From Dimorphilus gyrociliatus (Eukaryota > Animalia > Annelida), in the NCBI GenBank assembly GCA_904063045.1, contig CAJFCJ010000003.1:2342504-2406503 (forward strand): 64,000 bases of DNA, read 5' to 3'. This document shows, one piece after another, positions 58,501-61,677 of the stretch. The translations under genes and the position numbers were made by a program. The notes beneath the pieces are model-generated. The model saw only the letters and a list, made by a program, of their open reading frames with translations. It was not told the origin of the DNA and ran no database searches. The first letter of the stretch is position 1. Each line of letters starts with the position of its first letter.

Positions 58501-58764
58501 CTTCATCTACGAAAATATAACAGATAGATTGAAATGAATTACAGAGTAAGATGAATATGTCATCAAGTTGGGAAATGTTGGTATTAGAATAAAGGAACAA
58601 AGTAAGAAATGGATTATAAATATGTTAAAAATGTACATAAGAAATGTGTACTTACCATAACGAAATCTTTGCTCTTTGCTATGTTTTTTATCGACATATG
58701 TCAATTTATGACCGGGCAACGGATTTTTCTGGACAGTTGATAGTTGACGGCTTGCATCCACCAT
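55530..58764 (-). CDS. PDE10-like GAF-GAF-PDEase protein with a degenerate active site (probable pseudo-phosphodiesterase)
   Basis: PDE10-type N-terminus (FMEMNPKMLEQYVIDCIPLEVIKNWLIRK), GAF-A (STVAAYSA...DERFP...SVIAAPI), GAF-B (FSLEEGIAGYVAR...TRNILAFPI...LINK...FTSNDIE), catalytic exon with YRPVPFHNWKNA and IACLCLHIDHRG. Confidence 0.85.
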
Positions 58765-59285
58765 TTACAAGTATAAATTTTATGAGATGTGTTTTACTTT
58801 ATTGTTATTATTTTTAATTTAAAGTATAAAAATGATGTAAGTATTAACTGATAATAATCTTCCTTTAATTGTTTTGTATTAATTTTGCAGTTGTATCTTT
58901 TAAATTGTAGGGTAAGTTCGGTTTTTTAAATATTTCTTCTTTATACATTAAAGTTAGGAAAGCTTTGTTTCATTTAATGCTGAACTATTTAACGAATTTC
59001 ATCGTTTTCATGATATTTTTTCCAACCGACTTATTGATTTTCTCTCTTTTTTTTATATGTAAACGATATGTGTGAAACACTTAAGTTTTGGCTTTGATAG
59101 TCATAGGACGAGGCAGGATTTGTGTAAGAATTTCTTTATGATCTTATTCATTTTATTAATAGAGACTATATAAAAGCACATGTTTGAGAAAGTTTATAGT
59201 TGTAGTAGCTTTTAAACGGTATAATTAGAATACTATTTACGATATTTGAGTTTGGTCAGTTTGCCCAGTAGACTAACGAATAGGA

Positions 59286-59451
59286 AGAGAGACCGCGCGA
59301 ACGCAAGATCTCTCACTAACAAAAATTACGCGGCCGAATTGACCCAATGTGGGACAATCGCAGAGTTCAGCCAATCCCAGTGCAATGAAGGGCCTCGCTC
59401 CGAAGCCTCGCGCCTTCGTGATCACGCGATGACTCTCCGCCAAGTAAGTTT
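59286..59451 (-). ncRNA. U1: U1 snRNA (variant 5' end AAACUUACUUGG)
   Basis: Loop I GAUCACGAAG (U1-70K site), loop II CAUUGCAC (U1A site), stem III, helix H, Sm site AAUUUUUG and stem IV with a UUCG tetraloop; about 166 nt. Confidence 0.95.
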
Positions 59452-59512
59452 AACGGCTAAGAGCTGTCATTTGCTTAAAGAGTGATCTGGCTTGATACAC
59501 ATTTCATATCTC

Positions 59513-59520
59513 ATTTGCAT
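59513..59520 (-). promoter_or_regulatory. Octamer ATGCAAAT in the U1 promoter
   Basis: Exact octamer at -69..-62 relative to the inferred U1 start. Confidence 0.5.
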
Positions 59521-59934
59521 ATTAAGCATTGTTTTAGCTTTGGATTGTATTTTCGAAAGTACCAATAAAATGTGCTTATTTAGCCTCATTTTCAATCACA
59601 AATTTCACATTATCTTATTATTATGTAACAAATTGGTAAAAAATAAATTTTAGGGAGTTTTTACGAAAATACAATGGCGGCATCTGGTGGCTTTTTTACA
59701 ATATAATGGTAAAACGTAAATTTTCTACCAGTTTAGTCAAAGTTTAAATTTCATGATAACTATTTCATTTTAAACAAATAAAGTTTATTTGTGCTAAAGC
59801 AGGATTTCCTTGTGGATATAATCGAATTTACAATATGTCAACAAATGGAAACTTTATCTCAACAATCGAAGCAAACTCAGCTTTTTTTTGAGCGATATTA
59901 TCTTACTCTACTTCGTTGATATAGTTTTTGCAGA

Positions 59935-61677
59935 ATGAACACTGAGAAACAGTTCAAAGATTTAAACGAATGGTACACAAATTGTACATCTGTTATATTG
60001 GAAAAAGAAAGATCTATCTCAAAAATATCTAAAATATTAAAGAGCTTAGACACTGTAATTCTATCCTTACAATCAATGAGCAAAAATTATAGAAGTATTG
60101 ATTTAGAAGCCGTTATAATAACTAACTATCTATTATTATATTTATACAGTAAAACAAAATCTTCGAAGACGTTTAATCAACAATGTACAAGATATCTAAA
60201 TAGTTTTAATACGATCAGTAATTCACTCTTTCCTCGTGACAATTTCTCGAACAATGAATTATCACAATGGACATATTATCTTCATTGTATTCAAGTTTTA
60301 TGGTTAATTATTGATAATAAAATAGAAGATGGTGAAAAATTATTAAATGATATAGAATCTTATGATATAATTGCCAAAGAGGATGAATTTTACTTTAAAT
60401 CATCAAAATTGGGTTTTGTAAATTCGTCAATAGTTCCCATAGAAAATATCGATAATTTAAAGACACTGAAATCAAGTTTAAAATGTTTATTATACTTTCT
60501 TGATAAAGATTACACAAATTGTCTGGAAATAATTAAGAAAGAGACCAGTCTACGGGAAAAATGGTATATTGTTGGAGGTCTTTGTTATTATGAGAATCAA
60601 GAGTATAATGATTGTATAACATACCTTAAACAATTACCTTCCAGTGATATTGATTCGAATGAAAATCTTAAACAGTTTATATTAATTTTAATGGGAAATT
60701 GCAGTGTTAAGCTTAACAATTGGACACAGGCAATGTGCTTTTGGTTTAACGCTTTACAAATCTCTGCTCATCCAATCGTATTATATAATCTATCCTGTTA
60801 CTATTTTATAAAAAAGGATAATATTAAAGAATTAAAAATGTTAAATCTTTTATATAACAAATTATTGGAAGAAAGTAATGCCAATATTTTTGACGAAGAT
60901 CGAAAAGACGATTTACAAGATTTAATTTGTTCAAGAATACAATTCGACACACCAAAAATTGATTCATTTAATTATGCATCATCTATTGGAGTCTCCTATG
61001 TGATTGCTTCGAAATATTTCAATTTAGGAAGGTATGAAGAAGCTGCAGATAGTATATGTAAATTATTCGGGCATGTAGAGGATCATAACGATCAATATCA
61101 ACTTCAAGAAGGAATTTGCCTCACTAATGCCAAATTGTGGTTAATACACTGCTTAATAAAATGCAATGATTTAGAGGAAGCGATGGAAATATGCAATTCA
61201 ATGATGGAGGAAGAAGAGGAAGACGATTTTTTAGGTGACAACTTTACAGATGGTGTAATTACTGATAGACATATTATTATGACAGAGTATTACAAAGCTA
61301 TTATATATTTCAAGACGAAAAGAAACGCCAAAGCTTTAAAATCTTTCGATAGAGTTATTGAGAGTTTAATTGAACTGATATCAAGTAAAAAGTCTTCAGT
61401 TGAGAAGAAAGAGCTATCCATCCTCTTCACACACGAAGCGAATAATCTTGAATATATATTATCAAAGTCGTACGAATTTGTTGGCTACTTACACTATTCA
61501 TCTGGTGATAAAGAATTAAGTGTAAATTGTTTTCGTAGCGGATGTATGGCTTCATCTAAAGATTCTAGTATTGGTAATAATTACTTATTCTTATTAAAAG
61601 AAACAAATAAGTTGGAAGAATTAATAAAAAACTCTGATGATTCTACACCGCAGAAAATTTTAGAACCGGATATTTAA
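59935..61677 (+). CDS. FANCG: Intronless 580-aa TPR protein, FANCG-like
   Basis: [31 protein letters not shown] vs recalled human FANCG [50 protein letters not shown] vs [33 protein letters not shown] vs TAELESLELLVEAL; several TPR-like helices and similar length. Confidence 0.62.
   Translation: [580 protein letters not shown]

Follow-up and report, generated by a model that had tools for sequence, protein, structure and literature searches.

Variant U1 snRNAs are known as a kind, and whether they serve as alternative 'readers' of splice sites is a matter of debate, most of the human variants looking nearly inert, with the majority of human variant U1 genes expressed at <0.001% of U1 (PMC10870369). 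The closest described system is that of the planarian Schmidtea mediterranea, in which the U1C1, U1C2 and U1D1 RNAs begin with AAACTTACTTGG (Schmidt et al. 2018, PLoS Genet, supplement PMC6312358). These RNAs are represented by 1828, 1099 and 23 unique reads, respectively, and were validated by RT-PCR, and U1C1 and U1C2 are the most neoblast-enriched of the planarian U1 variants (PMC6312358). The C-to-U substitution at the base annealing to exon position -1 of the 5' splice site was remarked upon by the authors, who also raised functions outside splice-site choice for the U1C variants; position 2 of the RNA is not discussed there (PMC6312358). The arm described below is identical to the one in this planarian supplementary table, and a text search for its 12-nt string AAACUUACUUGG found it in no paper text. 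What is new is an annelid member, and with it the observation that an unrelated RNA body bears exactly the same double change.

The annelid gene lies in a 64,000-nucleotide stretch of the Dimorphilus gyrociliatus genome, hereafter the window (C3:2342504-2406503 of a 77.9-Mb assembly in 349 contigs), on the minus strand at 59286-59451. These 166 nt match the U1 family RF00003 over the whole model (1-166) with 120.1 bits, against a gathering score of 69.5 (E 9.7e-30). Genome-wide, the window copy is the sole full match to itself and hence single-copy, sharing 74-79% identity with the other U1s, the nearest of which on the same contig is 1.47 Mb away. It forms an island of 50% G+C in intergenic DNA of 27% G+C, its neighbours being a gene on the minus strand, with a first exon that ends near 58764, and a 580-codon open reading frame on the plus strand beginning at 59935; the two flanking genes are PDE-like and TPR-like. 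The 5' arm, comprising RNA positions 1-12 (59440-59451, minus strand, RNA position 1 being 59451), reads AAACUUACUUGG instead of AUACUUACCUGG; in other words, the canonical arm AUACUUACCUG is replaced by AAACUUACUUG, the differences falling at positions 2 and 9. A U1 gene with C9U at 59443, where the minus-strand RNA has U opposite a plus-strand A, was what the original prediction had proposed, and the full-length family match bears it out. The prediction had also set U9 opposite exon position -1, in keeping with the established register of U1 on the 5' splice site (stated alike in PMC6312358), where exon position -1 is read by C9 and intron position +7 by U2. Its further claim that all the other U1 elements are intact holds for the stems, the loops of stem-loops 1 and 2 and the Sm site, but not for the arm itself, where a second change, U2A (59450, minus strand; plus-strand T, RNA A), stood in the string given and went undiscussed. 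This second substitution falls in the otherwise conserved 5' AU dinucleotide and faces intron position +7.

The single-stranded elements that receive the proteins of the U1 particle are unaltered. The loop of stem-loop 1, GAUCACGAAG (59414-59423, minus strand), which is the U1-70K site, equals the Rfam consensus loop bar its one variable position (shown in lower case), while the loop of stem-loop 2, AUUGCAC (59380-59386, minus strand), the U1A site, is invariant across all the intact copies and retains its closing C-G pair. The Sm site AAUUUUUGU (59319-59327, minus strand) is identical to that of the canonical copies, and the UUCG loop of stem-loop 4 is unchanged. The cloverleaf, consisting of stem-loops 1-3, helix H and the 3' stem-loop 4, is recovered alike by the cmscan structure, the minimum free energy fold and alifold. 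With the cloverleaf defined on the major type, 41 of its 48 pairs are kept in the variant, ten having changed on both sides and nine on one side while still pairing, and a few stem positions are unpaired; when an equal number of random substitutions was introduced into a canonical copy, the pairs kept averaged 27.3 (sd 3.1) and never exceeded 40 in 20,000 simulations. Across the paralogues, RNAalifold finds compensatory changes in 14 of 52 pairs. The earlier argument that the paired stems speak against decay is upheld by these pair counts, by the ten double compensations and by the unchanged protein-binding loops, and on this sequence evidence the variant does not appear to have been decaying, at least through most of its history. 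A decayed U1 pseudogene was rejected as a candidate identity, because the promoter element, the Sm site and the stems are all kept, unlike in the four degenerate U1 copies of the same genome.

A search of the whole genome with RF00003 yields 13 U1 loci, of which eight are intact and canonical (L001-L008; 130-139 bits, all with ATACTTACCTGG), one is the window gene (L009), scoring lowest of the intact copies at 120 bits, and four are decayed. An independent pattern scan of the genome, using the U1 arm and the loop of stem-loop 1, recovered all of these loci but L013, that is 12 of the 13, and found T at position 9 in only one. Three of the decayed copies, L010, L011 and L012 (C65:4551-4712, C133:19672-19833 and C133:34023-34184), are identical pseudogenes with a GUAC start, a degenerate Sm site and 3' third and no stem-loop 4, and the fourth, L013 (C72:27410-27578), carries G11U and a degenerate 3' third; all four are devoid of the upstream promoter element, yet keep 'aaagc' immediately 5' of +1. 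The intact gene L003 (L003:1501-1665, equivalent to C24:621586-621750) represents a third U1 lineage, equal to the window variant in its divergence from the major type and the closest relative of the variant in the tree described below. It has compensatory stem changes, an intact promoter element and all 11 canonical arm bases, and since it has thus evolved in a structure-preserving manner while retaining the canonical arm, the two arm changes are specific to the window gene. A side observation concerns U2: at least ten U2 snRNA genes or U2-like copies, scoring from 72 to 159 bits, lie within 37 kb at C29:558867-595524, which suggests that there are U2 variants or pseudogenes as well.

The census bears directly on one of the interpretations initially offered, namely co-evolution of U1 and donor sites, in which the U1 of the organism turned to U9 and its donors followed by acquiring A at -1. 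Many donors of the window do have A at -1, and the -1 base before GTAAGT roughly follows base composition, both of which would suit such a history. Collecting all the U1 loci, however, as had been proposed, reveals C9 in eight intact, promoter-bearing genes, all with the canonical AUACUUACCUGG arm, and U9 in a single gene, so that organism-wide co-evolution is ruled out for practical purposes and retains a negligible probability. The locus thus adds a second 'flavour' of U1 to the genome and does not amount to a rewiring of the entire splicing code.

The upstream region relates the variant to the snRNA genes of the genome. Common to all eight canonical genes, about 60-78 nt upstream, is the element AACTCAAYATGCAAATGAG, and its counterpart in the variant is CTTAATATGCAAATGAG (59510-59526, minus strand; -75 to -59). 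The core motif CTYAAYATGCAAAT occurs at 33 sites in the genome, compared with one for the reversed control, and every one of the nine intact U1 genes has it 75-82 nt upstream, as have three U5 genes and one U4 gene at 78-82 nt; being shared by U1, U4 and U5 genes, it is the snRNA proximal sequence element. The exact motif was present at none of 15 U2 matches. The U1, U4 and U5 genes account for 13 of the 33 sites, about 20 lying beside no assigned gene, and the element contains the octamer ATGCAAAT, for example at 59510-59526, C7:652628, C7:4224634 and C12:1956932. Other promoter features are less well preserved. The canonical TATA-like element (about -33) is not kept in the variant, which has TTTAAG instead (59474-59479, minus strand; -28 to -23), a weak and uncertain match to the canonical CTATA/TTATGAA (about -35 to -28) by visual comparison. 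The 'aagc' just 5' of +1, present in every other copy, is missing, and the tYtcaaaag-like motif that follows most of the canonical copies has no counterpart in the downstream flank of the variant, where no clear 3' box is seen. The loss of the TATA-like element, of 'aagc' and of the 3' motif makes weak expression, or a shift of the start by 1-2 bases, possible.

It is these losses that lend some substance to a reading in which the gene is a silent or nearly silent relic, that is, a long-functional U1 that is now a weakly expressed or unexpressed pseudogene, with arm changes due to neutral decay. Such a state would also suit a gene that scores lowest of the intact copies against the family model and has the longest branch of the tree, and it would agree with the minute expression of most human variant U1 genes (PMC10870369). 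We nevertheless regard it as unlikely. The proximal element is intact here but missing from the true pseudogenes, the Sm site and both protein-binding loops are unchanged against a difference of about 25% elsewhere in the RNA, and further evidence on the opposite side comes from other organisms.

Part of the variant gene is found in 17 public sequencing runs from 13 studies, seven of the runs being on record as RNA. This evidence consists of Logan contigs, which carry no start, end or strand. The contig of run X12 is identical to the window over 4315 nt and has the same base at 59443; it probably derives from the source DNA and hence is not independent. In run X1, from another organism, a 331-nt contig spans 59275-59459 with two differences in 185 nt, and its continuation over the downstream flank (59245-59285, minus strand), a possible 3'-end processing signal, has 26 of 30 letters alike (about 87%). 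In run X7, a 140-Mb poly(A) RNA library from a third organism, a 216-nt contig spans 59275-59453 with three differences in 179 nt, and its flanks are unlike those of the window. The depth of this contig is 9, which would exceed what single-copy DNA of a 78-Mb genome could give in such a library. Both the X7 and the X1 contigs overrun the predicted mature ends, by 26 and 8 nt upstream, respectively. All the listed differences in the two runs fall outside the arm, one unlisted difference per run lying near a contig end, and the 31-mer shares of 10/13 for X1 and 8/13 for X7 are those predicted from the listed differences alone, which argues that the arm is unchanged in both. Run X3, a coral metatranscriptome matching 61% of the words, was discarded, as it yielded only a piece of canonical-type U1.

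The conservation of the gene at 98-99% beside diverged flanks points to purifying selection, and in two other organisms it is hard to reconcile with a relic. The same runs address the base at 59443, which was to be confirmed in raw reads: it is the same in the X12 contig (with the caveat of the probable common source), and the k-mer shares of X1 and X7 fit an unchanged arm. A sequencing or assembly error at this position, which has only the general possibility of such errors to recommend it, is accordingly of vanishing probability, the more so as divergence from the other copies extends over the whole gene, to about a quarter of its positions, and the same arm exists in other animals.

Given the register, the perfect target of the variant arm is CAA/GUAAGUUU, the slash marking the exon end, and the two arm changes together would make this site, with A at -1 and U at +7, the one with which the RNA pairs best, standard G(-1) donors being accommodated only by a G-U wobble. 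Nearest-neighbour duplex energies give the variant arm an advantage over the canonical arm of up to 5.6 kcal/mol on NAA/GU donors, as at site 38884, whereas on the ideal canonical donor it binds 4.1 kcal/mol worse than the canonical arm. All eight of the A(-1) donor strings to which the original prediction pointed are present on the plus strand, no more than 2 nt from where they had been placed, and most of them end long open frames. Most also carry GTAAGT, a strong intronic half to which canonical U1 could bind as well; such a half is the usual compensation by which canonical U1 is able to use A(-1) donors.

A dedicated class of donors matching the variant arm is not visible in genome-wide 9-mer counts, admittedly a crude test. 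These counts are 657 for AGGTAAGTA, 1916 for AAGTAAGTT, 1700 for AAGTAAGTA and 885 for AGGTAAGTT, and the odds ratio for the association of A(-1) with T(+7) around GTAAGT is 0.84 compared with 0.78 in the reversed control, non-donor occurrences being included in both. Three attempts to derive a donor consensus were dominated by noise. Joins of the GT...AG type between open frames gave 608 real and 350 control candidates in 308 kb (the window and other loci), too noisy for a donor logo; a motif search by expectation maximisation at the ends of long open reading frames reached 1.8 bits against 3.8 bits in the control, from which no consensus is claimed; and a pattern of GTAAGT followed by an acceptor matched the reversed control more often than the real sequence. 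In 264 kb comprising the window and L027-L046, GTAAGT occurs 93 times on both strands, whereas 181 occurrences are expected from base composition and its reversal occurs 216 times, and in the same sample the base preceding GTAAGT roughly tracks genome composition (70% A+T), with no excess of G(-1). The shortage of GTAAGT, taken with the lack of a G(-1) excess, suggests either a weak or unusual donor consensus or an avoidance of cryptic donors.

The second arm change deserves separate consideration. The 5' AU dinucleotide of yeast U1 is tuned for binding of the cap-binding complex, and all 18 replacements or deletions of AU are viable, the worst being GG, GA and UU (PMC5766165). Since all of these changes are viable, a start with AA should be tolerable, and by analogy it may alter biogenesis as well as pairing at +7. 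A different possibility is that the variant is expressed without any role in splice-site choice, for example in suppressing premature polyadenylation at AU-rich sites or as a competitor that blocks donors. Such alternatives were raised for planarian U1C by the authors themselves (PMC6312358), and the arm target AAGUAAGUUU is AU-rich in a genome of 70% A+T; set against this, the intactness of the U1-70K and U1A sites is what a normal snRNP able to do both jobs would have, and we consider this reading unlikely.

How widely the arm is distributed was assessed by scanning metagenome contigs, with only positions 3-13 (T at 9) and the loop of stem-loop 1 fixed. The scan returned 20 loci, 11 with the double change, two with C9U alone and seven chance matches. 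In the 11 double-change loci (L052-L055, L057, L058, L060, L061 and L064-L066), a U1 with AAACTTACTTGGCG adjoins a canonical U1 with ATACTTACCTGG. The bodies of these variants share with planarian U1C the GCGCUY of stem-loop 3 and AGUCGAAC.UGUAAUUUUUG before the Sm site, and their canonical partners resemble U1A1; together with the 5.8S rRNA of L060, which has what we take to be a metazoan-type motif, these likenesses indicate that the sources are probably flatworms. In five of the loci (L055, L058, L060, L061 and L066) U5, canonical U1, variant U1 and U2 lie in the spacer of an rDNA repeat, and in L052 and L064 the U1 genes are linked to 5S rRNA. A 1976-nt contig assigned to a Sedimenticola sp. 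MAG (L067; JALVNE010000069.1) contains only a tandem array of canonical, variant and canonical U1, and is eukaryotic DNA mis-binned into a bacterial genome. The two metagenomic U1 genes with C9U alone (AUACUUACUUGG) are at L047:2063-2224 and L062:929-1103. Apart from this change the first of these scores very well as a U1 (151 bits); it is sister to the double-change clade and may represent an intermediate state. The seven chance matches of the scan, L048-L051, L056, L059 and L063, were set aside as not being U1 genes, as was L068, a chance match from the search that yielded L067, and an exact scan for a stem-loop 1 of the window type found no match in the metagenome contigs.

The relation between these variants and the window gene was assessed in a maximum-likelihood tree from which the arm columns had been left out; the planarian sequences were compared by eye and excluded from both alignment and tree. 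The window variant falls inside the U1 clade of its own genome (99/100), as sister to L003 (94/95), with the longest branch in the tree (0.51), and the metagenomic variants form a separate clade (92/89) that excludes their canonical neighbours. The arm-free tree speaks against descent of the window gene from a common ancestor with planarian U1C, in that it does not bring the variants together and forcing all of them into one clade costs 12.9 lnL (AU p = 0.045). Since the window copy groups with the other U1s of its genome, the arm was either gained independently or kept through concerted evolution: from the sequences, either the same two substitutions would have arisen independently in the annelid and flatworm lines, or the gene would be an old paralogue whose body has been gene-converted while its arm was kept by selection. 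An 11-nt arm allows about 495 double changes, of which this is one, and with a recurrence of this kind both readings of its origin imply selection on the arm. Neutral decay, for its part, does not predict that the same change, at odds of one in about 495, should appear in the expressed planarian variants. One and the same precise double change is thus encountered in an annelid, in planarians, where it is enriched in stem cells, and in many uncultured animals, always beside a normal U1, and because it recurs across animals and, in the annelid, on the animal's own RNA body, the arm itself appears to be under selection.

We therefore favour the reading that the variant U1 snRNA gene of the window is functional and kept by selection, as a minor paralogue alongside the eight canonical ones, and assign it a probability of roughly 0.7. 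The gene is intact, carries the proximal promoter element, bears the marks of structural constraint, is conserved in relatives and has the arm of the expressed planarian variants, and to this extent the notion of a variant U1, advanced at the outset as a specialised form, holds good; the specialisation proposed for it, in the use of non-G(-1) donors, is a conjecture. The transcription of the mature RNA, its assembly into snRNP and its effect on splicing are steps that we infer. Transcription would start from an snRNA-type promoter, and with its Sm, U1-70K and U1A sites unimpaired the RNA is predicted to assemble into an ordinary U1 snRNP, which may then shift or widen the choice of 5' splice sites for a subset of introns or in particular cells, as has been proposed for planarian U1C. 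A broader proposal, which we advance tentatively and would not back at even odds, is that AAACUUACUUGG defines a distinct second class of U1 specificity, either old within Spiralia and hidden by the concerted evolution of the RNA body, or acquired at least twice, by annelids and by flatworms, through identical substitutions at both positions, with a specific and conserved set of targets, be it A(-1)/U(+7) donors or a stem-cell or germ-line programme as in neoblasts. If this were true, a layer of splice-site choice based on snRNA variants, long suspected, would be reachable by comparative genomics. With its genome of only 78 Mb and its one copy of the variant gene, this compact, culturable worm would offer a clean knock-down system for the introns that depend on the variant.

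Placed among the known systems, the window gene has the length of canonical U1 (RF00003), its four-way junction and stem-loops 1-4, its U1-70K, U1A and Sm sites and its promoter element, and differs in the 5' splice-site recognition arm by the two substitutions at positions 2 and 9. With planarian U1C1, U1C2 and U1D1 it shares the first 12 nt, which are identical, the coexistence of a canonical U1 (U1A1 in the planarian) and the intact cloverleaf, Sm site and AUUGCAC loop. The differences lie in arrangement and in body: planarian U1C1 is about 300 nt from the canonical U1A1 on one scaffold, whereas the window gene is solitary, and the flatworm-variant features GCGCUY...AGUCGAAC.UGUAAUUUUUG are not found in the window RNA, the body of which resembles the U1s of its own genome, with a stem-loop 3 and helix H like those of L003. 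The planarian variants are known by their expression and cell type, the window variant here by its sequence. The second U1s of the 11 metagenome loci and of L067 likewise have the AAACUUACUUGG arm, always beside a canonical AUACUUACCUGG U1, but, unlike the window gene, they have a planarian-type body and reside in tandem snRNA, rDNA or 5S clusters. The human vU1 genes (O'Reilly et al. 2013, PMC3561869; Wong et al. 2024, PMC10870369) are, as here, imperfect paralogues beside canonical genes, some with changed 5' arms and some expressed, capped and found in snRNPs, and a role at alternative targets has been proposed for them. Yet they are many, recent and mostly very weakly expressed, with few affecting splicing (PMC10870369), whereas the annelid has a single one, which is old (about 25% diverged) and has been conserved among relatives.
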